64,000 bases of DNA from assembly GCA_002189035.1 (NCBI GenBank), contig NEEC01000013.1, positions 496,001-560,000 on the forward strand. Direction: 5' to 3'. The translations under genes were made by a program, and so were the position numbers. This document shows, one piece after another, positions 25,852 to 41,588 of this stretch. The notes below the pieces were generated by a model that was given only the letters and a program-made list of their open reading frames with translations, was not told where the DNA came from and searched no databases. The stretch is from Utricularia gibba (lineage: Eukaryota; Plantae; Magnoliophyta). Every line of letters starts with the position of its first letter. The first letter of the stretch is position 1.

Positions 25852-28479
25852 CGCCAGACTCCGCCGCCGAAAAAAACGCACTCGTCCGCCCGGTGCCGTG
25901 TCCACCGTCCCCCCCCGTTTGAAATATATATTGCGAGAGAGCCCTCCCTAGTAACCGTTGAGGGCAGCAAGATCCAGTGGCACGTGTCACCTCTTCGAGA
26001 ATTTAAATATTTATTGGACTTCCTTGATCTCATTCCGACAATTTTTTGAAATTCGAATTAATTAATTTTTGTAATCATATTTGAAAAATAGTTCCCTTAT
26101 TTGAGTATTCTACAATTATTACACTGTGAATAAGTCTAACGCATATTGCTTTAATTTTTCAAAAAAAAAAAAATCTATGAATTTCATTGATTCAAATCAT
26201 AAAAATGAATACTATGAATTTTAATAAAAAATTAGACCATAGATTATAAAATCATGGTTTCATTGTAATTAGCCCATATTTCATGTCTCGGTTTTTTAAA
26301 CAATACTTACCCACATGACATGCTAATCAAAATGAATAATGCTTTGTGAATTAAACCGAGAATGATTTTGTTTCCATAACAAAAAAAAAATATGATTTCA
26401 AATTCAGACTAATTTCAGATGAGATGTAAATTTCTGCGATTTTGCTGGTGTACATATGCATAATACAATTGCTCCTGAGAGGGCCAGCTAATACGTTACT
26501 ACGCAGGGTTTCGATTTCGCATGTCTTATAAATTACGGCATTATCTTTCAATCACCAACCAGTTGGAAAGTTGCAATTTCATGTCAGGAAAACTTAGGAG
26601 CTAAGAAGCTAATATTAACCACAATTTAATTACGGCAAAATAATGCAAGACTAAGATATGGACGCAACCTCGGGAAAATGAAATGATTGATAGACAGACA
26701 TTAGATTCCTTGCTCGAAAACAATATCATATATCATAATGTTTCTCTATCGGAGTATTAAGTGTGCATTTTTGAACACCTTGCTTAATGTGCATCTAAGA
26801 TGCACCTGCCGTCACGCTGCTATTGCTAGCGTACGCATACGGGCGTTATGTACGTGTACTATTTGGTCAGCCAAAGGAACACAACTGGATTCGCCAAGCT
26901 CAATGCGGCAGGCACATGGTAGTACTAATCAAGGTGCCCCTGGTTCAAATCGTCCCGGATCCATCCCGGGTTTCCGTTTCGACCCGTTATTCGCCTGATC
27001 ATCAAGGTGCACATCCATGGCCAGCGTTGTGAGTCCGAGGGCGGAGCATATGCTGCGCATCCCATCGGGCGCTTATTCGTAGAAGAAATCGACCAACACC
27101 AGCACTTGAGCGCACCCGACGATGAAGTATTGGGGCACTTGCCACAGAATGGACACGGGGACTCGCTCCGAGTCGAAATGGCTATGTGTTTTTGACATAA
27201 TGAACCCGAGGGCTCCGGCGCAAGCAATGGCGATGATGGAGATGAAGAGGCCATCTCTTGTGGCCCCTAGACCTTGTTGTGATAGGGGCGGGACAATCAG
27301 TCTGTCATAGATAGGGTGCAAAATATGACACCCAGAGTGTTGAAGAAGGCTAACGAGGCTGCCGGGATTTCGATTACAAGACCTTCAAGTTGTCAATTTG
27401 GCAATACACACTTGCAAAAGTGATCCCCGTCGCCCAAATGGGAACCAAACGTATCATGGCTTTTAGCGAGTCTTTCTTCTTCAAGGATCACGGCTGCCTT
27501 GTCGAAGAATCTACATGCAAAAGATTGTGTATTGATAGTTGAAACATACGCCCCAAGCTTAAAACAAGGGGGCAATTGAATGAACAAACGGGTGGTTAAC
27601 TACTGAGTTTAAAATTTAGAATAAAAGGAGACAAGTATTTCTTGACTCTAACATATAATTTTGTAATTAAAATTTCGAAGGACTGTTGATTCTGATTTTT
27701 AATATTTTATTATTTAATTTCATTGTACAGAAACAATCCATAACTTTATTGTAGTTTAATGCATGATAACAATATAATATACAATGATGAGCTTAGAAAT
27801 ATTAACTTTTTACTCTAAACTATTGGAAGTTGGAATAGAAAACTGACGGCAGATTGATTCGTGCAAATTCATTCTCTCACTAAGTATTGGAGAGATAATT
27901 CCAAAACATGATCAATTTTGTATTTTTTTTACATAAAAATTCACATAAATATAGATTTCTTGAAAAAAAAAATACATTTGATCATATTTTATATTGAAAA
28001 ATTTTAATATAATATATTACAATACAATGATATTATAAATGTATATTAACCAACAAGTTAAAACATAATCAATTAAATGCATGCAAAAATTATACAATAA
28101 AACATAAAATAATTACATAAACAATATTATTTGAATTAAAATCCCAAAGTTTTGAAAACGCACCCATGAAAATATTTGAAATTAAAATTAATCAATTCTT
28201 GATTTTCTTTTCGAATGAATATGAGTTAAGCTACTTGAGAATAATTTTGATGTAGCACGATCTCTAATAGGCAATTTTCTTACTAGATTGTGAACAAGGT
28301 CAAATGAAGATGCATCCCATCCACTCACATGAATTGGTGAATTTAATTACATTTTGTGTATTTTTGCAAATGTTTTCACTTGATAATATTTTGAAATATA
28401 AGAACTTACATTTTTATTAAATTCCTTATACATCTAGAACATGAACAAACTTAACAACTGTTATGATATTGTAAGTTAC

Positions 28480-30060
28480 ATGATACATCATAAGATAATT
28501 CGTATCTGAATAACATGCAAACATGAAATAGCTTTTTGTTGTCATTTTCCACAAGTACATGTCAAATCTGTCAAACAAAAAATATAGTAATATTTGTTTT
28601 TTCTAGAACTTTTGCTTCGAGACAGCAACATGGTATTCATTTTCTCTGCATTATATTTCTTGACCCAATAGTTGGTTGATTTATCATCATATCTTCTATA
28701 AACATAGAGCGAACATGAAGTAAATCATTGGCTCCTTTCCATGAGTAAATCCATCTTTGATTTAATATTAGTGAAAATTTTAACATATCTCTCGAAAAAT
28801 GCCCTCAACAAGAGCTTTGGGGGGGGGGGGTAATCTTTGTGCCCATATAAAACACTGTTTAATGATTCATAAATACTTGTGGTATGCACATCACATCTGC
28901 AAAAATAAGAATTATAAGATTAATATAGTAATAATATGAATAAAATTATTACATTTTGAGTTACCTTATACCATTACTATACGATAATATCCATTGCATT
29001 GAATCGATTCATAAAGATACTAAAATGCTGCTGTATTCCTATTTCTGATTTTCTGCATAATTATTTGGAACTTTTTCGTTTTTGAACTCAAGATAACCTC
29101 CCAAAATACATTAACCAAGTGTTTTGACTTGAAATTGGACACGAAATTAACAAGTAGATGTTGCATACATAATCTATAATCTCCCATAGAGTTATTGAAT
29201 GTAGGTATATCCTTAATTGTAGATAATAATCTTACACCATGATCAGTTACTAGACAAATACAACATCTTTTCACGATATGCTTAACTAAAAGGTTAAAAA
29301 ATTAATAGCAGGATTCATAAGATTCTTCCTTAACAATAACAAATGCAAGTGGAATTATAATGCGAACACCATCAAGTGTGCATGCTATTAGTAAGTGTGC
29401 ATGGTATTAGAAGATGATATCTATATTCTACATATAGATATATTCCATCAATAGTAATGACTAATCAGCAATACTGAAATGCATGGACGCATGACTCCAA
29501 AGCCCACAATACATGATGTAGCATTGGCTTGCCATCATAAGAACAAAGATTCTCATATTTAAATATAATATTTATGATAAAATAAATATGTTAGTAAACA
29601 TAAATCAATACTTGTAAAATAATAAAAATGAATTATGTGGATTAGTTTTTTTAATAGATAACAAATAGTAAATGAGCTTTGTCACCGATTCTTTCCAAGT
29701 GCTATACATATGCATAATATCATCTCTAATAGTAGTACATCCAAGTTTATATGATATCTTGAAATGATAAGCTTCACTAAAATCATCCAAGTACATCAAA
29801 AACACGTATCACTGGATTCGTTTTAACTTTGCTCATGATGTGAAGAAACACAAATTTCTAACAGTCATGGAACTGTTAGAAAACCAAGTATGAGGTCCCT
29901 CATGTTGTGTCGTAGTTCAAAATTGAGTAACAGTATTGTTCCATATTCTAACACACCATTCACATGGACGTGTTGCATTTTAGTTGATATAGTTTATTTC
30001 ATATTGTTTGTTGTTGCTCTTCTCAATATGGAAATGCGTTTTCAACTTTGTGACACAGTA
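28480..30060 (-). mobile_element. MuDR/MULE transposase relic inside intron 3 of the NPF pseudogene
   Basis: Minus-strand fragments in MuDRA order: PCEWCVR...HEGPHT, then ISYK...MYSTWKES, then VLWALESCVHAFQYC*LVITIDGIYLY...IPLAFVIVKEES, then CLVTDH...YRLCMQHLLVNFVSNFK, then SWIM-like DLTCTCGK*QQKAISCLHV. TIRs were not identified. Confidence 0.85.
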
Positions 30061-31574
30061 ATAACTCAATGCTTAATTTATTGAACTTTTATCTTTTAAA
30101 AAAATCCCCCTTGCATGAATCACCACTTATCCTGTCGATAAAATTCAAAGTTTTCTCAAACTCAATTGTTGTTGGAATTTCTATTGCAACGCTGTTTTCA
30201 CAATATTTCATTCTATTTATTCATCATTATCATTATTTGAAGAAAATAGAGATGAAATAACTTATTGCATCATTTTGTATTTAGCTTGCTCAATATCATC
30301 TTTCTTCATAAATGATCTGAATCCCATAATATGTTTTCGTCATAAGGTGATTCGGGTGATGAAGAATTATGATATGTTGGTGAAGTATATGAATTATTAT
30401 GACTAGTTGATACTTCTATTACATTAACTAGAGATTAAAAATACAATATAGTATTGATATACTTTAATCATATGAATTAAAAAAACACCTAAATATAATT
30501 TAAAACTAATAATAATAAAATTTATTTAGAAAAAAAATTTGCATACCATTATGTTGTTGAATGAATAAATGTATGAAGTTTAGAGTTGCACTAATATACA
30601 TATCAACATTTGAAACTATATGGCTTTAATTAAAAATCCAAGACAAATTGTTATTCGTTTGATCAAGAGGATGATTGTACTTTTGAAGACACATTGTTAG
30701 ATTTATAATAATATAATTCACAATAATACTAATAGAATACTCAACTGAAGATAATTGTATAACTTCAAAAATTAACGATATTAGCATGGATATTGAACCA
30801 TCTCGAGCAACCCAAATAGAAAATCGCAATGGTGAGTCATATCACATATTATTTTTTCCATAAAATAAGTTACCTCCCCAATAAAACTGGATCTCAATTG
30901 GATAATAAGCCATTGAAATTCTGAGAGGAAGAAAAGGAGGAAGAATGATGATATGAGAGATATATTCCATAGTATTCTTTGTTTATGAATTTTGAATTGG
31001 AAAAAAGACAAATGAATTTAATGTAACACCAAAATTTTTTCAAAATTTTAATACTAAAATCTGAACATGTCAATGTCACATGTGTACTATTGCACTGAAC
31101 GGATTGCTTTTGATATAATATAAAATGAAATAAATACAAGACACTATTTATATGAATTTTCGTGCAAAAAATAAACACAACATTCTGATATGAAAATTTG
31201 ATTAAATATTAATGAACAAAGTTGGTCATGATTTGGAATTTTCTCTTCAATACTTGGTGGTAAAAAGAATTTTATAAGATTTCTTGTATGTTGAAAAACT
31301 TTCTTGGCGCTTGCTTCGATATCAATCTTTTCATGTAGTAAGCTGGCATCCTGGGGAGCCTGCACCCTGTACTTCCTCAAGGATGCCACCAGCACTTTGC
31401 ATAGTTGAGTGATCGGACTCCCACTACGTTTTTGTTATCGGTAGAAGCGAGTTCCCAAAACGAAGGGGGAAACTACGAATATCATCAGCACACAAGGAAT
31501 CCCAAACCCCCATTTCTAGTTAACATTGGTTTGCACCCAAACCAACATAGTGCAAGCAACTATATTGCCGAAAG

Positions 31575-31747
31575 TATTAGAATATACAATCTCATATCGA
31601 AATATGAAACCAAAACAATTAAGTATATAAGAAATTATAGATCACTATTAATTGGTTGGACCTAATTTTTTTTAATATAATTCAAATTTCTTATGTACTT
31701 GGACTTCATGTATGCTCGTCCGATCTATCGGATCCTTACGTTCAACT
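31575..31747 (-). mobile_element. Short LTR-like element (same family as 20274-20444) inserted in NPF pseudogene exon 3
   Basis: The reverse complement aligns with 20274-20444 (GGATC..AT...TCGGA.GAGCA, AAGTCCAA.TAC, AATAGTGATCTATAATT, GATTGT.TATTCTAA). NPF coding sequence flanks both sides. Confidence 0.7.
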
Positions 31748-32136
31748 GAAGATGGAACCATCTTTTGTATACCCAACTGAAGAAGGAACTTTGACTCCTC
31801 GTCTCCATTTTGTCATTTTCATCGAATTAGGTAGCCCGAAGAGAGGCGATGCATGGACGAAGTCTGCCTTCTCAATTGTCGTAGCTCAACATGAGCCAAT
31901 TGTTCTAATATTAAAATCAAAGTGATTTAATTATTGAAAAAGAAAATTAAGGGCAAAATAATTACTCTAAGACTTGATTTAGTCTTAGGCTGTTATAACC
32001 GAACTGCTAGTCTTGTGTAAGTTGACTTGAATAAGTTCTCTAATTTTGTGAAAGTAGTTGCATCTTATCCAATTGTTCTTATTCTTTAAAAGGAGGTATC
32101 TCTTTTCATATGAATCATCTGAATCATGGAAGTAAC

Positions 32137-33337
32137 TGATAGCACAATTTTTATTGTGTTTTTATATATGTTTTTAAGTGTGTTTTGTAGGGTTAAATAT
32201 TGTTTAGTGTGCTAAATTATGTCATTTTGCATATTTAGATTGTTAGAATGTGTTTATTGTGAAAACAGGCTCAATTGGCAATAATTGAGCCGAAAACTCT
32301 AATATTTCGTCTAGTCTGTGTTTTAAATCTTAGCAGGATAAGAACTAGTATTGTAGCAGCACACTTTCCGCGTTGACAAGTCAAAGGGGACAGAAAAGCT
32401 GTGCAAAAGTCACTTTCTGTTGAAAGTAGCCACCCTTCTGAAAAGTTAAGATTTGAAACATAGATCTAACTTCTAAAAGCCTGAGGAAAAGACGAAGCTA
32501 CCCTTACTTTTGAGTTGCAAAAGAAAAAAAGAAGGGAGAGAGAGAAAAGAAGACACAATGTGCATAGAGTGCACGGATAGTGAATAGTAGGAGCAGGAGT
32601 GAGGAGAACTTCATTTCTTTGGCGAATGTCTCCGGCAACCTTCAGATCTACACTTCTACATCGTCTTTCCGCCCAGAAACTTGATTTCCAGCAGATCTAC
32701 GATCGAGAGCAACCGCTGAACACTTTATTTTCCATTTTCTGCACTCCCATTTCTGTTGACAAACTAGCTGCTGTTTCCTTCTACATTTTCATGCTTTTTG
32801 TTATGTTCTTGCACCTTGTCGTGAACGATAAATCCTCTATAGAACTTATTTCCGCATATGAACATGTTCTTGCTTACGCCTTTCGTGTTTGCCTTTAAGT
32901 TTAATATGCTATTTACTGTTCTTGCAAACCCTTACTCTGTTTTCAAGCATTTTAAAGTTGGGTTTAAGCCTATGGGCTCTCTTGAGTGACACAAGAGTTA
33001 GACTCTAGTGTAAAACCTAGTAAAATCACTTTTATTTTATGCTTCCTATGCATTTGCATTAATTTCAGTGTCTCTTCATCCCTGCAACTAGTTTCTTTTA
33101 GTCACTATTATTTTAGGTTTTACTCGCGTTAGAACTAAACCCCAGAAAACCCCATGTTTTCAGTAAATGTGATAAATTTCAAGAAATTGCAACCATTCCC
33201 TGTGGATTCGATCCTTGCTTGCCACACTACATTAATTTCTGTGATTTGTGTAGTAGAATAGTTAGGTTTATAAATTTTTTTTGATGCATTGAATGTGCTA
33301 GACCGTGATATTTAACAACCCATTTAAACGTTCATCA
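32137..33337 (+). mobile_element. Solo LTR (Gypsy/Athila-like), 1201 bp, same family as 340-1533
   Basis: TGATAGCAC...TTCATCA termini and co-linear homology to 340-1533. The flanks GTAAC/ATAAT match 3/5 and both mismatches are transitions, consistent with a decayed TSD. Confidence 0.85.
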
Positions 33338-35556
33338 ATAATTGATTTGGTGAGTAGTTAAAAATACCTTTAGGAGGGGTGTTGTATGGGATAAATGTAT
33401 GCTATTAGTAAGGTTAATAAATGTACCGGAAAAAAATTATACCAATTATCAAACACACATTATGTATCCCAATACCAGGTATATCTATGCTTATACTAGC
33501 TACCAAACACAACCTTAGGACATTGAATTACCAAGTCTTTAGTCTCTTCATTTTCTTGTTCTTATTCTTTTGTGTTTTCTTTATTCATTCTAGTGTACAT
33601 CGATTTTGGCTTCATTGTTCATCGGTTTTAGCTGTGGAAGCGAGGCCAATATAGCCAACAACACCATCCCCTGAACCACATATGAAAGAAGCTTATTCAT
33701 TAAACATGAACCCCTGTATAAGAGAGTGTGTCAAACATAGTTTAACATTGATTATTCTAATGCATACTAGTGAATGAATTAAACAACTCACAACAATGTA
33801 GATGATCAAGAAGATGAGTATGCTCCATTATCTTCCAATATATTCATTGGCCACAAATGCTGGCATCAGAGGGGTTACGTAGCATGTGCCAGTTCAATTT
33901 GTGACACTTATACAAGCATCGTAGTTGCTTCGCCCGATCCTATTCTTGAAGTAGACTACCAAATTACGGCTCACACCATCATAGACAACTCCCTCAAAGC
34001 ATGCATCTATTGAGTGAAGGAAAACCCTCAAATTAGATGAGCAAGAACTAGACTCGGGGTTCCGGGTTAAGTTCAAAGTGAAACATGACGATACCTAAAA
34101 CAAAGGTGCAAGCTTTCCATCCCCCGGTTAAGCTCTTCTTTTCTGGATTACCCTGGAAATCCGAGGCTCCATCTTTTGCACAAACATCCTCTTCAGGCAT
34201 GGGGTGCTACTACAAAATGGAGATGAAATAACAATAGTGGAAAGATCATAAGAAGCTACATAAAAGGAAGCATGTATATGCTTCCACTAAATCAGAAATA
34301 TCAAGGAATTGATCTGGCCTTGGCCTAACAGTACTCCGAATTAATGAACTCGATTGGTGCATAGAACCGATAATGCCGAGACTAAAGTAAATTCAAGTAA
34401 TATTTTATGTAAATTTCGAAGTAGAAGTGACTATATCGTTCAATAGGCCTATTCATCATTTTAGATTTTTGCACGATTTAAACAAAAATAAAATATAAAA
34501 ACTTGCTCTGGAAAATCAAAACATGTCAACAGAAAAAGATTAGACTATTATGGATCTTTCTCCCGTTCCCATATTAGTTTTGGGATTCAATTCTGTCTTG
34601 TTTATTCCGCCAATAGGATGACCCCAATTTAGAAAATGGGTTTTTACCTCTAGTTACGTGGTCTTGGTAACATTGGTGTCCTCTTACACACACGTGTGGC
34701 ATTCATCCCAAAACCAAAATTTGTTGCGGGCCTTTGCGATTGCATTCTTTTTATTATTTTCAAAAAACGTTATGTTTCGTCATTTTCTGTAGTTATGGTT
34801 TTTAATTTCTTTCCCAAAGCGTATTCATAAAATATTTATTCGTCTTCTTCTTTTTTTTTTTACAATTATTCGGAAATCAGAAACAAAATATGTATTTTTT
34901 TTGCAGCTGCTTTTAAAAAAGATTTTTTAAATGCAAAATGAATTTTTTTGGGAGTTGACCCCACATGGCTCATTATCAAAAATATAATTCAAAGTTATAG
35001 TAAAACCATGGTCATTTTTGGTTTGTCAAAAATCTCCAATTAATCGTGCCTAGTTATTAAATAAAGAGAATTAATTATACCTAATCTTCAAATAGTAAAT
35101 ACTAAAAATATCTAATACATAAAATTTTAAGAATTAATTATGTTCCATACCCTAAATCATGAAGTATACTTAATATTTTAAGAATCGATTTTGTTAATAG
35201 GCATGAAATATGTATATATTAAATAATAGTGAATAATTCCATCCAAATTTTAAATATTAAGTTTTTGGTACAATTTTCCCATTTTTTTTAACTCAGGAAT
35301 TAAGTGGCTATATTCATGTTACTGACTCAGGAATTAAGTGGCCGCAAGAGTACTACTGGGTACATTTTCCAACAGGTTTTTTATATTCATCCCTCTATTG
35401 TAAAGTAAAAGCTTTTGCATAGTTTACAACGAAATTATAAAATTATGATCCAGCATAAGGCCTATCATTCAAACCCTTAGAAGACGTGCACGCACATTGA
35501 TTTACACTACAAGTCAATTGGCACATACTAAACACTCATGTTATTACAATATACTT

Positions 35557-35578: not shown

Positions 35579-36702
35579 ACATGAGTAGAGTGCGACCTGT
35601 TTCGATCCATTCGATTTTGATTCAGAACTGTACGGTTTCAACAAATCGCTGATTCATAAATCGCGGTTCATTGTAAATTATAATTTCAGTTTCAATTCAA
35701 AACAGATTCCAAAATTTTGAATTGAATCGAAAGGGGAACAGAGATTGAAAGCGTTAAACCGAAACCATATGGATGCTCATGTCCATAAACTAGATCTGCT
35801 GTTTTGATTGGAATCTATTACACCTCTATCCACGAGCATGGAGTTAATGGCATCGTTCACTCCGCCCGCAACCCATTAGGGAGCCCATGATGTACCGTTT
35901 CCATCAGCATGGGGTCTACGAGTAGGCCCATTTCGTGCGCCAATCGGGAAGCCGAATTTAGTTCCCCTTCCGTTCGCGTGATGGCGGTGGAGGCGCCGCC
36001 GCATCTGGCTGCTGCTGTTTGAGCTACCCAGGATGTGCCAATCCCCTGGCCGAGGAAGACGTGGACCGCTGCTTACCTTCCGCCACTACCCAGATTCAGC
36101 TTTCAGGTGCTGCTTCTTTCTTGCTTTCTGGACGATACCATCGTTTCTGCCTGGGATGCAAAGAGTTTGAAATTCGTTTGGAAAATCAAACCTTGAATTT
36201 CCATTCTTTTTTTGTATAAATCGTAGGAAGATCATTCTTTCTCTCTTGATTCGAGTAAAACTAATTTTACACGTTGTTTCATGCTGAGGCTTCGATGATT
36301 TTGGGTGTTGAATGATGCGCGTCACCTAGAGAAAGAGAGAGAAATGTTTTTGGGGATTTGCGTTTCAGGATCATCCAATGCTTTCTGGGTTTGTTGCAAA
36401 TGGGCATATCCAGGTATGACCTTGAAGCTCCATCCGCAAACGAACGAAATGATGAGAATGCAAGGTGGCAGCCAATTCAGAAAGCACAAAGTTTGTTTCA
36501 GCGCTAAGTAGTTCGGTGAGTGCAATGTTTATTTGTACTTGGTTGTGTTTGAGAATCAATTTGTGCATTGAAATACATCAGTGTGCTATAAAGTAGTAGG
36601 AAATACTGCTCTTCATGCGCCTCAGAACGATGCATCCTGATTCTCTTGGTGTAAGGTGTCTTGTTTTGTTTTCTCAGTGTGGTTTACATGTTCCTTCATA
36701 TG

Positions 36703-38738
36703 TTACAGCATCTTGTACGTGTACCAGTTGGACAAGAAAAGAAACACCACCAGATTCAGCATGCTCAGCACAATCATCAGATAGTAGAAGTAGTCAAGAT
36801 GTCCGTAGTTCAAGTTATCCTGGATCCATCCCGCGTTTCCGCCATGACTGGTTACTAGTGTTACAATGCTGACCATCAAGGTGCTCATGAAGTTCCCCAT
36901 GGCCAGTGTCGTGAGTCCAAGAGCCGAGCATAGGCTTCGCATCGTGTCAGGGGCTTGTTCATAGAAGAACTCAAGCTGCCCCACCAACACAAACACTTCT
37001 GCGCACCCGAGAATGAAGTACTGAGGCACCTGCCAGAGAATGGACATGGGAATTTGCCCCATGTCGTGGTAATCGTGTCTTTTGACGTAGTTCAACCTGA
37101 CGAGCTCGAGGAGCCCTGCATAAGTCATGGCGATTATTGAGATGAAGAGACCAGCACCCATCCGTTGGAGCTGAGTTAGGCCGTTTCTGTGCCCTGTAAA
37201 CCTTCTGCTTACAGGAACAATGATCCTATCATATATCGGAGTCCAGAAGAGAACACTCAGAGTGTTGAAGAAGACCAACGAGGCTGCCGGGATTTCAAAG
37301 TTCGAATTTCCGATACGGGCATCCATTGTAAGACCTTGGAGCACGAAGAAGCTGTCAATTTGACAGTACACACACGCAAATGTGATTCCTGTGGCCCAAA
37401 TGGGAAGCAAACGTATGATGGCTTTCAGTTCTTCCACTTCAGTTACTGTGCAGAGCCGCCATGGATTCACTGTTAACTTCAGTTTGTCTTCTTCTATTAC
37501 AACAGCAGCCTTGTCAAAGAATCTGTAGCCAAAAACACACGTGGAGAGTCAATAAAAAAACCTCGAGAGCTTCTTCTATATTACTGAAACTTACGAAAGG
37601 TCTTTTGTATGTTGAAGATGCTTCCTGCTTCCTTCGACGTCTGAAACTTCGTATAGCAGCCTGACGTCCTCAGGAACTCGAGCCTTGTACTTCCGCAATG
37701 AGGCTACGAGCACTCTACAAATTTGAGTGATCGGACTCCCGTTCGGTCGCTGGTGTCGATAGTAGCGAGTTCCGGCAACAAAGGCAACGACGACGATGAC
37801 CATGAACATGGAAGGAATCCCAAAGCCCCATTGCCAGTTGACATTCATCTGCACCCAAACCAGGGCCGTACAAGCGATCATACTTCCCATGTTAATTGAG
37901 AAATACATCCAATTGAAGAATGAACTTCGACTCCTCTTCTCGGCTTCGTCGTTCTCATCAAACTGGTCAGCACCAAAAGAGGAGACACATGGACTAACTC
38001 CACCCGACCCAAGCGCGATCATGTAAAGGGCTACGTAGAAAAACGAGGCTTGCATCTCCGTCGCGTGGCACGAGCCTACCTCACCTTCACAGTTGGAAGG
38101 TCTCAAGCCTGGAATCGACGCCGACGACACCAATAATAACATCCCCTAGACATGAGAAATTCATAGGGTTAGTTAATCTCGAATCAGGCTTTAGTTTCTA
38201 AAGCGAAAACACACAAACTTACAAGAGCGTAGATGATCAGGAAGACCACTATCGTCCAATATCTTCCAATGTAGGCATCAGCCACAAATGCCCCAATCAA
38301 CGGAGTCACGTTGCAGGCTCCCGCCCAATTCGTGACATTCACAGAAGCACTCGAACTGCTCTCCCCTATCTGATTCTTGAAGTAGACCACCAAGTTCCGG
38401 CTCATGCCATCGTACGCCAATCCCTCAAAGCATGCATGCACTGCAATTTCATATTGAAGGTTGAGACTTTGAACCTCATGCGGAAAATACAGAAATTCAG
38501 AACTCGTCTCTACAAAAGCTAGTGCACCGATTGAGTTTACAATGCGAGCTGCTCACAATAAAAAATATTTCACAAACTCTATTACTTGAGTTTTACTCGT
38601 TGCAATTCTTATCTAAAATTCTAATACGAAACCTAAGATGAAGGCGCAGGCTTTCCATGTCCCGGTGGAGCTCCTCCTGGCCGGATCGCCGTGGAAATCC
38701 AACGTCCCGTCTTTAGTATGCGAATCCTCTTCAGACAT
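36703..38738 (-). CDS. NRT1/PTR family transporter, NPF8 (PTR1-like), about 564 aa; exons 38738-38633, 38440-38223, 38145-37595, 37522-36703
   Basis: Three GT-AG introns join four exons in frame. Motifs: GTWKAC, NVTNWAGACNVTPLIGAFVADAYIGRYWTI, FGADQFDE, SFFNW, GSPITQ, FFDKAA, NPWRLCTVTEVEELK, WQVPQY and LEFFYEQAPD. The upstream in-frame ATG at 38828 (594 aa) overlaps a CTATATAT TATA-like box, whereas the ATG at 38738 matches the paralogue start. Confidence 0.93.
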
Positions 38739-41588
38739 GGGTTTCATGCTGCATTGAGGAGCGCCGCCAAGTGATTGTTTGTATGAAGAAGAAGGTGCAT
38801 GAAGTGAAAGCAAGGGAGTACCTTCCATATATAGGTCTGATTCCGCTGACTAAAATGAAACTGTTTTTATAGGAAAAATGGGTCCGATCTCCTCTCCCCC
38901 ATCCTTTTTTTAATATTTAACTGGGAAGAGTTGACTGCGGAGTGCTGAAAGCGGAGTGTCTTGTGAAGCATTGATGGAGCACTGGAAAATGAATCAGCCG
39001 TCGATATCATGTAATCGTCTCTGGAAAAAAAGTACCCTCAGAAAGTCAAATTGGGGATTAGGGCAAAATCCCAACCCGCTCGCTCCTCCGCCACGAAATT
39101 GATTGTGTGGATTTACAACGGAAATATACCTCTCTTGTGGTTGTGTTCCTCAGAGAGTCTCTTCACATAATTCTAAATGAACCAAACTTTTACGCATACC
39201 TTCGTTTTTCGTAAGGAGCCTAAATCTCTATTTTTACTATTCTGTTTTGTATGTTATCAATTATATAAAAAAATATTTTGATAATGGAAAAATTGTGTCA
39301 GTAAATAGTAATTACTATTATGTATCTAAATTAGTCTTCAAAACAATGTTTTAGTTATTACTATTTGAAAATTATTTATAATTGATAAATACGGTTCGAA
39401 AATCAATAAAAATAGTCTCTATTATTTAAATTAACAACGAAATTGATTCCCAATTTAAAACCTTTATTCTTTTCGTAATTCAATTTTATTATTTTTGATT
39501 GACTTTACATCCCTTATAACCACTGCCCACTGTCTACACATGAACCACCCGCCGCTGGTATTTAAACAATTGGAATAAATAAAATTTGGATAAACCATTG
39601 AGTAACATAAAAACTTGTAGACATAATGACGGTAACTGTCAGGAATATTAAAAACAATGTAAAAATCGCAACAGGGTCTCTGCGGCAGCACCTGCAACAA
39701 AAAAAAAAACAAAAAAAATAAATAAAAATAAGTAAAATACAAGCATTCCAGTGTAAAAATAAAAATATTCGAGACATTGTAAATAATGTGTTTTTTAATT
39801 TACCTGTGCATTGATGACATGGCAAACACTCATTTTGGGTTTGAATACCTACAGCTTTATTTTAATCAAAACCAAATTTTGTAGTATAGCACTACAAACA
39901 CTCGTACTTGTCTTAAAATTTACACTGTGGGCACCCCTGTTCCTGTTTTCAGTGCCTACAGTTTCTATCAGCTGTAACGGGTTAACTTCAGAGACTGCAA
40001 AGGAGTTTTCTGTGGTACTTGTTATCTCATATATCATTTTAAATTTCATTTAAACACTTGTCTGTGGTATGTGGCTGTTTTTAATATTCAAAGTGCATGC
40101 AATGCAGGGTAAGATGTTGTATGATTACCAATACACAATTGTGGTTAAAATAGGAATTGATTAAAAATTATACGGTTGAAGTGTGTCATTACGTGGCCGC
40201 AATCAATGGATCGGATAATTATTTTTGGTCACATGTTGTTTCAGATAATAGTATCATTAAATGAAGTCTCTAATTACTTGCTTACTCTTTTAGGCTATCT
40301 TAATTACAATATATATTTGACGTATTTATTCTTTTTTCTCATCTAAAGTTCATCTTTAGCATAAAAAAATTAGAATGCAAAATTTATTCAGTGAAGCTTT
40401 TTCAACCTAATTGAAATCATTGGCCAAGGATTTTGAAATACAAAAAAGTATTTTTAAGATAAAAGAATCTTTTTATTAATTAAAATAATTTTACAGATAA
40501 ATGTTATGGAAAAGGAAAATTATTCATGGATCTCAAAAGACTAGATCGAGGTTGGTATCTGCCAAACCTTTTTGTACGAGGAGAAGAAGAGGGGATGGCA
40601 TACCTTATAAAGGGGTGCAGCATCCATCTAATAGGAACATACCCTATGACTGAGATGTAGTGCAGCCCGCTTCGCACGATCTTCATTACATGATCATGAG
40701 ATGGGGTTTGGTTAAATAGTCGGTGCTTCACGCTGTAAGAGGTCGCTAAGAATACAAAAGATGGCAGCTGCAGCTCAATGTAAGGGAAGAGAGAAGAATA
40801 CATTTCCGTGATGGATTTCTAGTTCATTCAAAATATACTTGTTATTATTGTGTGAACCAACTCTAGCATTTCCATCGTACTGGAGCGATTCGCGAAGAAC
40901 CGGTTTCATGGAATTATGACACTCAACAACACAGATTCTAAATGGCAAAATCTTTCCCAAGTGAGAGCAGGGAAGGCGATAACCATACATTTCTAATTTT
41001 GTCAGTTTTATGGATCGCTGCTCGTCATTTTCTTTAACTATTAATGTACATTTAATATTTATTAAATCGACCAAAAATAATAAATAAAATTTGTAGTAAT
41101 AAAATGCTAAAATAATATACAAAATACATTTTAGAAACAATTTACTGGTTACTGAAAAAAAAAATAGTTCTTGCAATTTCATTCAAACCTTATTCATATT
41201 TTTAGTATATTTGACTTCATGTGGTTTTGCGATGCATCCCCAATTTTGTCAATTTTTCGGATTATCATCTTGACTTATCATTTTCTTTAACTATTAATTT
41301 AAATTTAATATTAATTAAATCGACCTAAAATAATAAAAAAAACTTTGTAGTAATAGAATACTAAAATAATATACCAAACAAATCTTAGAAACGTAAGGCA
41401 ATATTTAACTTTAATGAACTCTTAAATTAATAATCATATCTTGAACTATGCTAATTACTAGATACCTCACCAACAGTTTCATCATAAAATATAATGGATG
41501 GTTGGTTTGAGGGCTAAACCATTTCATCATATAAAACACGTAGTTGAGAAAAGAATGTAAATAGGACGAATCCCATGCACCGTGTGGT

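Follow-up and report, generated by a model that had tools for sequence, protein, structure and literature searches.

How far can the coupling residues of a peptide transporter be rebuilt while the gene is still kept by selection? The question is raised by a gene of the NPF family on the minus strand of a 64,000-nucleotide stretch of the Utricularia gibba genome (contig NEEC01000013.1, positions 496,001 to 560,000 of the forward strand). This whole stretch is called the window, and positions below count from its first letter. An earlier note on this DNA described the gene as an intact NPF8-type transporter that has lost its proton-coupling residues. The gene has unusual residues at its coupling positions, nests among canonical peptide transporters, is under purifying selection and is transcribed; from these observations we infer that its transport mode and its substrate may both have changed. 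The reading that we prefer, with a probability of roughly 0.55, is that the gene encodes a working carrier that departs from the canonical H+/peptide type, probably acting in an equilibrative or exchange mode (as a facilitator or exporter) and on an altered substrate.

The intact gene (36703-38747) has four exons and 567 codons. It was compared with a canonical NPF8.1/8.2-type orthologue (motifs NECCERLAYYG and GGIKPC) on the genomic contig L001, a Logan contig of SRR30527214 (positions 26-2274), which also served as outgroup. The exons, with the transmembrane helices (TM) that they encode, are as follows.

38633..38747, minus strand: exon 1, start ATG at 38747-38745, encoding MKPMSEED...WKACAFIL and the first base of a split Val codon
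38223..38440, minus strand: exon 2, TM1-TM2, borders as in L001, partly under an RNA contig of public run X1
37595..38145, minus strand: exon 3, TM3-TM6 and the start of the central loop, Pfam PTR2 E=2.9e-50
36703..37522, minus strand: exon 4, TM7-TM12, coding 37522-36706 with stop TAA at 36705-36703, PTR2 E=2.5e-54

All three introns have GT..AG ends, and exons 2, 3 and 4 begin and end where their L001 counterparts do. Intron 1 splits a Val codon of TM1 (G at 38633, TG at 38440-38439). Exon 1 matches the N-termini of NPF8.1-type proteins at 51-66% identity over ∼35 residues. Exon 3 covers positions 14-159 of the PTR2 profile (PF00854) and exon 4 positions 183-392, such that both six-helix halves are matched. 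Homologue searches were run exon by exon, and the matches of the exon translations in the PDB are NPF6.3, NPF2.10 and SLC15A1-4. An in-frame ATG also lies upstream at 38828, 27 codons before the modelled start, and use of it would prepend MEGTPLLSLHAPSSSYKQSLGGAPQCS (38828-38748, minus strand). We prefer the shorter start at 38747 because relatives begin near MSEED or MAEED.

The residues that set this gene apart lie in TM1, TM2, TM4, TM7 and TM8. They are listed here together with the retained TM10 Glu.

38438-38406, minus strand: TM1 motif HACFEGLAYDG, in exon 2
38435-38433, minus strand: Ala replacing the first Glu (E1) of ExxER, NPF6.3 E41 position
38423-38421, minus strand: Gly replacing the Arg of ExxER, NPF6.3 R45 position
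38411-38409, minus strand: Asp replacing the second Tyr of ExxERxxYY, hPepT1 Y31 / NPF6.3 L49 position
38399-38397, minus strand: new TM1 Arg, NPF6.3 V53 position, T>R
38324-38322, minus strand: TM2 Ala, NPF6.3 L78 position, S>A
38312-38310, minus strand: TM2 Asn replacing a pocket Tyr, hPepT1 Y64 position
37993-37995, minus strand: TM4 Ser (AGT, motif GSGGVSPC) replacing the conserved Lys, NPF6.3 K164 position
37356-37354, minus strand: TM7 Asp, NPF6.3 T360 position, G>D
37266-37264, minus strand: TM8 Asn where canonical NPF8.1 has Asp, NPF6.3 Y388 position, D>N
36999-36997, minus strand: retained TM10 Glu (GCAEVF), NPF6.3 E476 position

Across the exon junction TM1 runs ...WKACAFIL/V-HACFEGLAYDG; the helix reads VHACFEGLAYDG here and GNECCERLAYYG in all 51 close relatives. 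The ExxER/K motif is thus incomplete (A-C-F-E-G), with only its second Glu (E2) retained. The Lys/Arg of TM4 and Glu/Asp of TM10 that form the intracellular-gate salt bridge are likewise incomplete, with Ser in TM4 and Glu present in TM10. PDB alignments place the Glu-Gly of ACFEG on E44-R45 of NPF6.3 and E26-R27 of hPepT1, and the Asp of AYDG on hPepT1 Y31. In 51 full-length NPF8.1-type reference proteins the residues at the tested positions (E, C, E, R, Y, K and E) are invariant; all 51 have NECCERLAYYG, GGIKPC and the TM10 Glu. The TM4 Lys is also kept in 117 of 120 homologues of exon 3 (GTGGIKPC in 116, GAGGIKPC in one). The exon translations and PDB alignments therefore bear out the motifs that had been reported for the gene, namely ACFEG..YDG in TM1, GGVSPC in TM4 (AGT at 37993-37995) and a kept TM10 Glu.

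The changes extend beyond the coupling motifs. When the gene is compared with the canonical NPF8.1 state at the twelve functional and pocket residues of NPF6.3 named in a review (PMC11677463), eight positions are altered: E41 (E>A), R45 (R>G), L49 (Y>D), V53 (T>R), L78 (S>A), K164 (K>S), T360 (G>D) and Y388 (D>N). The other four, at E44, H356 (Tyr here), E476 and F511, are unaltered. On balance the cavity has lost Glu, Arg, Asp and Lys and acquired Asp, Arg and Asp, and the alteration of these additional residues means that the charged network is rearranged, not simply lost. The description of the gene as having lost its coupling residues is thus right about the losses, but it understates the rearrangement, as the cavity also acquired Arg and Asp. 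The new Asp of TM1 lies four residues from the new Arg of that helix, a spacing that would suit an intrahelical salt bridge.

The TM1 motif is seen at two loci of the assembly. The Ser codon is backed by the assembly alone, and RNA contigs cover neither the TM1 nor the TM4 codons. Two technical explanations for the TM1 motif were considered and rejected: an assembly error, given its presence at two loci, and mis-splicing that hides a canonical exon, given that intron 1 offers one usable acceptor and one usable donor and that the pseudogene has the same motif.

Does the gene belong to one of the NPF clades that lack these motifs? Its closest matches are eudicot NPF8.1/PTR1-type proteins (55-71% identity per exon), which are 73-88% identical among themselves over the same region. 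In a maximum likelihood tree of exon 4 (80 rows, LG+C20), it groups with Erythranthe 14G076000 and three Logan open reading frames (ORFs) in a clade of five rows (support 97/91), and this clade is nested in a core-eudicot NPF8.1/8.2 clade of 26 rows (99/97). Outside the latter fall NPF8.3-like sequences and the charophyte representative, Klebsormidium. The rows include no named NPF2a, NPF4 or NPF7, whose exclusion rests on the supported nesting in NPF8.1/8.2; the named near relatives are all NPF8.1/8.2-like. The terminal branch of the gene is 0.73 long, six times the median of 0.12, and with a branch of this length its exact sister is probably less certain than its membership in the clade. Of the 252 positions with at least 97% conservation in the reference set, the gene departs from the conserved residue at 40, the level of NPF8.3-like or charophyte (Klebsormidium) sequences, while its tree neighbours differ at one or two of the positions that they cover. 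The nesting among canonical NPF8.1/8.2 genes and the long branch together indicate that the loss was independent and fairly recent. We conclude that the gene appears to be a young, fast-diverged offshoot of the canonical peptide-transporter lineage, outside the old motif-less clades. Two further proposals of the earlier note, membership in NPF8 (here placed in the PTR1/PTR5 group) and an independent loss of the motif, are supported, the former by the closest matches and the exon-4 tree and the latter by the nesting.

Among the sampled PTR1/PTR5-type proteins, motif loss was seen in the window gene and in no other. Identity of the proteins found did not exceed 71% for exon 4 and 65% for exon 3; the lack of a closer one is weak evidence, coming from single-exon queries with a length filter that barred full-length proteins. 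A liverwort sequence, P0087, seemed at first sight a parallel case (AYD and a TM1 Arg, without the TM4 Lys) and was rejected as an offset alignment of a DxxER motif.

The order in which the changes arose can be read from a second copy in the window.

26850-34203, minus strand: decayed paralogue of the NPF gene, with 9 in-frame stops in aligned codons, frameshifts, deletions and three insertions

The insertions measure ∼1.7 kb (33600-31870), ∼0.2 kb (31767-31590) and ∼3.8 kb (31276-27509). In this pseudogene TM1 reads D-ACFEGVVYDG and TM4 reads G-R-L-R-P-C, with Arg (CGT) where canonical proteins have Lys. Both copies have ACFEG..YDG and the new Arg in TM1, Asp in TM7 and Asn in TM8; the changes in these three helices thus predate the duplication. 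Private to the intact copy are the K>S change in TM4, whose AGT is one base from the CGT of the pseudogene, and the Y>N change in TM2, where the pseudogene keeps Tyr. The pseudogene has Gln at the TM10 Glu position. From its branch-specific nonsynonymous divergence (Ka), constraint on the pseudogene itself seems to have lasted through roughly three quarters of the period after the duplication. These states agree with what had been reported of the pseudogene (ACFEG..YDG, and Arg at the Lys position), and its share in the TM1 change supports the claim that this change is older than the duplication.

Comparison of the two copies also shows how the intact one has been maintained. Between them Ka is 0.25 and synonymous divergence (Ks) 1.04, and a Ka/Ks of 0.24 at this Ks implies that the variant protein has been constrained for most of a long history. 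Ka to L001 is 0.24 and Ks to L001 is saturated (proportion of synonymous differences 0.71 or more), so only Ka can be divided by branch. With L001 as outgroup, the intact copy has a branch Ka of 0.057 (bootstrap 0.039-0.079) and the pseudogene 0.179; if Ks is split equally between the paralogue branches, omega is ∼0.1 and ∼0.33, respectively. At sites that are invariant in canonical proteins, private changes number 3 in the intact copy and 40 in the pseudogene (chi2 31.8), with 15 changes common to both. The branch Ka, the Ka/Ks and the 3-versus-40 contrast make simple decay unlikely.

Sense transcription is documented by RNA contigs from four public runs (X1, X2, X5 and X6) aligned over 36300-39100. 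One contig of run X1 joins 37595 to 37522 and omits 72 bases with CT..AC ends on the plus strand, which are the modelled intron 3. The junction is that of the minus-strand gene model, which shows that a correctly spliced sense RNA is made. Part of exon 2 lies under another contig of X1. Together with the omega of ∼0.1 on the intact branch and the counts of private changes, the sense RNA upholds the earlier view that the gene is not simply decaying.

Published work shows what the altered residues do elsewhere. In the bacterial transporter PepTSt, mutants of Glu22, Arg26, Tyr30 and Lys126 lose proton-driven uptake and keep counterflow, while Glu400 is needed for both; proton-driven uptake strictly requires the primary amine of the TM4 Lys (PMC3419923). 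NPF6.3 is inactivated by each of E41A, E44A, R45A and K164A (PMC11677463), and substrate accumulation by NPF2.11 depends on the charged ExxEK residues (PMC4675897). The uncoupled PepTSt mutants (E22A/Q, R26K, Y30A and K126A/R/H/Q) affect the same four positions that are altered in the intact gene, with the TM10 Glu (E400) intact (PMC3419923). Unlike these mutants, the changes in the gene are natural, combined and accompanied by new charges, and the replacements differ (Gly, Asp and Ser).

Loss of the TM1 motif is by itself common. Longo et al. (2018) found a complete ExxER/K in 62% of 2383 NPFs and an incomplete one in 38%; it is complete in 0% of NPF4, NPF7 and NPF2a, 72% of NPF1, 82% of NPF5 and 78% of NPF8, and the TM4-TM10 pair is present in 83% of all NPFs and in 86% of NPF8 (PMC6288477). 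The statement that natural loss is known mainly from NPF7 and some NPF2 members is therefore too narrow, as the incomplete 38% include all NPF4, 28% of NPF1, 18% of NPF5 and 22% of NPF8 (PMC6288477). With 22% of NPF8 lacking ExxER and 14% lacking the TM4-TM10 pair, loss within NPF8 is not unprecedented. Neither an AxxEG- or ACFEG-like motif nor a matching NPF8 variant turned up in the searched part of the Longo supplementary table, which covered some species only. Among the clades without ExxER are passive exporters of nitrate or chloride and an H+/K+ antiporter (PMC12780319). Like the intact gene, NPF2a/NAXT, NPF7 and NPF4 have a lost or incomplete TM1 motif, and NPF7 also lacks the TM4-TM10 salt bridge (PMC6288477). 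Unlike most NPF7 and NPF2a members, which have no chargeable residue, the gene keeps E2, and unlike NPF2a, NPF7 and NPF4 members it appears to descend from canonical NPF8.1/8.2 genes.

That ExxER loss is widespread in NPFs, and has been counted within NPF8 before, is thus already known. What is unusual here, as far as the sequences compared can tell, is the position of the loss inside an otherwise invariant PTR1/PTR5-type group and the absence of both the TM1 residues and the TM4 Lys. The apparently compensating gains of charge, the readable order of events and the evidence of selection are also unusual. Like the H+/di-tripeptide symporters NPF8.1/PTR1 and NPF8.2/PTR5, the gene has the PTR2 fold, keeps the TM10 Glu and has Tyr at the NPF6.3 H356 position in TM7; its exons 2-4 have the same borders as in the orthologue on L001. 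Unlike them, it has replaced E1 and Arg in ExxER along with the second Tyr of ExxERxxYY, further lacks the Lys of TM4, the pocket Tyr of TM2 and the Asp of TM8, and has acquired the TM1 Arg and TM7 Asp.

What protein would result? We propose that the gene is a functional member of the NPF8.1/8.2 (PTR1/PTR5) lineage, transcribed and selectively maintained, whose central cavity has been rebuilt in two stages. Before the duplication, six changes would have removed E1 and the Arg of ExxER, turned the second Tyr into Asp, neutralised the TM8 Asp, and added the TM7 Asp and a TM1 Arg predicted to sit two helical turns up TM1. After it, the surviving copy would have given up the TM4 Lys and the TM2 pocket Tyr as well. 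With the carboxylate-binding Arg and Lys gone and the TM10 Glu needed for translocation kept, the protein most likely still cycles as a carrier. Replacement of that Arg and Lys and of two pocket Tyr argues against proton-coupled di- and tripeptide uptake. Since the lost TM1 and TM4 residues are each required for proton-driven uptake in the POT and NPF transporters tested and the TM10 Glu is kept, the protein is most likely a carrier, and not a canonical H+/di-tripeptide symporter; our best guess for what it carries is something other than ordinary peptides.

Several points weigh against this reading. Some NPFs without a full ExxER, namely NPF4 and some NPF7, are still proton-coupled (PMC12780319), and motif loss is therefore not proof of uncoupling. 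Eight altered positions of the twelve exceed the 37% background (p=0.035), but without the four residues that prompted the analysis the count is four of eight (p=0.33). As the enrichment is significant only with the residues that triggered the finding, we draw no evidence of directional selection from it. Long-term conservation appears to rest on one paralogue pair, with no orthologue of the same motif found in other species; the same single-exon searches, for this purpose weak evidence too, returned no ACFEG or GGVSPC protein among the homologues. The omega values assume an equal split of Ks. Finally, sense RNA is present in one of the four runs at low depth, and antisense RNA dominates the other three.

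One rival reading holds that proton coupling persists at another site, with E2, the TM10 Glu and the new TM1 Asp, TM1 Arg and TM7 Asp as a replacement network. We consider this unlikely. In its favour, the stem lineage that saw the losses also acquired T>R, G>D and Y>D, and the pseudogene has all three of these gains; L49, V53 and T360 all line the substrate pocket of NPF6.3 (PMC11677463); and some NPF7 show electrogenic proton coupling independent of ExxER (PMC12780319). Bacterial POTs and two moss NPF8s moreover have a basic TM1 and an acidic TM7 residue at NPF6.3 positions 52 and 357 (PMC6288477), one and three residues from the new Arg and Asp, a TM1(+)/TM7(-) pair that seed-plant NPFs lack (PMC6288477). 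The new residues are nevertheless offset from the bacterial pair, their proximity is deduced solely from the description of the NPF6.3 pocket, and the TM4 Lys was lost later with no obvious replacement.

Less probable still is that the gene is an incipient pseudogene, or silenced in practice, so that its odd residues reflect relaxed constraint on a redundant duplicate whose ORF has not yet been hit. The dead tandem paralogue, the six-fold branch length, the sparse sense RNA and the polyadenylated antisense RNA over exon 4 in three of four runs fit this account, as do K>S and Y>N, two of four private changes at invariant or pocket sites, which remove pocket residues. The records of the two copies speak otherwise: 567 codons and three GT..AG introns have stayed intact over a Ks of ∼1, during which the paralogue gathered 9 stops, frameshifts and insertions; the Ka of the intact branch is one third of that of the pseudogene, with private changes at 3 versus 40; Ka/Ks is 0.24 even with a pseudogene branch in the pair; and a correctly spliced sense contig exists. 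Selection that persists though the residues for active transport are gone could also point to a role other than transport. The protein might be a sensor (transceptor) or might regulate canonical NPF8 transporters as a partner, and binding or conformational change would then matter, not net flux. NPF6.3 is an established transceptor (PMC11677463). We regard such a role as quite improbable here, as the protein keeps the gating Glu of TM10 and the 12-helix PTR2 architecture that working carriers have.

How NPFs came to handle many substrates in many modes, starting from proton-coupled peptide uptake, has yet to be explained, and since the known ExxER-less clades are old, the steps behind them are hard to reconstruct. 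In the window gene the order is legible from the dead paralogue, with the TM1, TM7 and TM8 changes first and the loss of the TM4 Lys and TM2 Tyr later. We tentatively suggest, as a possibility somewhat short of even odds, that an H+/peptide symporter lineage rearranged its cavity charges under purifying selection within one asterid lineage, arriving at a novel mode of coupling or at a novel substrate, possibly one that is charged and not a peptide. If so, the gene would be a young, datable natural example of a switch in NPF mechanism, with the canonical ancestral state persisting in sister genes. Given its young nesting, readable order and ongoing selection, a few reciprocal mutants with the canonical sister could separate changes of coupling from changes of substrate. 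Should the protein prove to be an ordinary weak peptide carrier, the case would be a mere curiosity.

The antisense RNA belongs to a separate transcript.

36300-37577, continuing leftward to ∼36000, plus strand: spliced and polyadenylated antisense transcript, in runs X2, X5 and X6 (three studies)

It contains no long plus-strand ORF within 36300-37577, and may act as an antisense regulator or belong to the 3′ untranslated region of an upstream gene. Its intron (36516-36708, GT..AG on the plus strand) has an acceptor that overlaps the NPF stop codon. From there the transcript spans the entire last NPF exon and continues unspliced into NPF intron 3, where an AATAAA (37551-37556) is followed by poly(A) after 37577, 21 nt past the signal.

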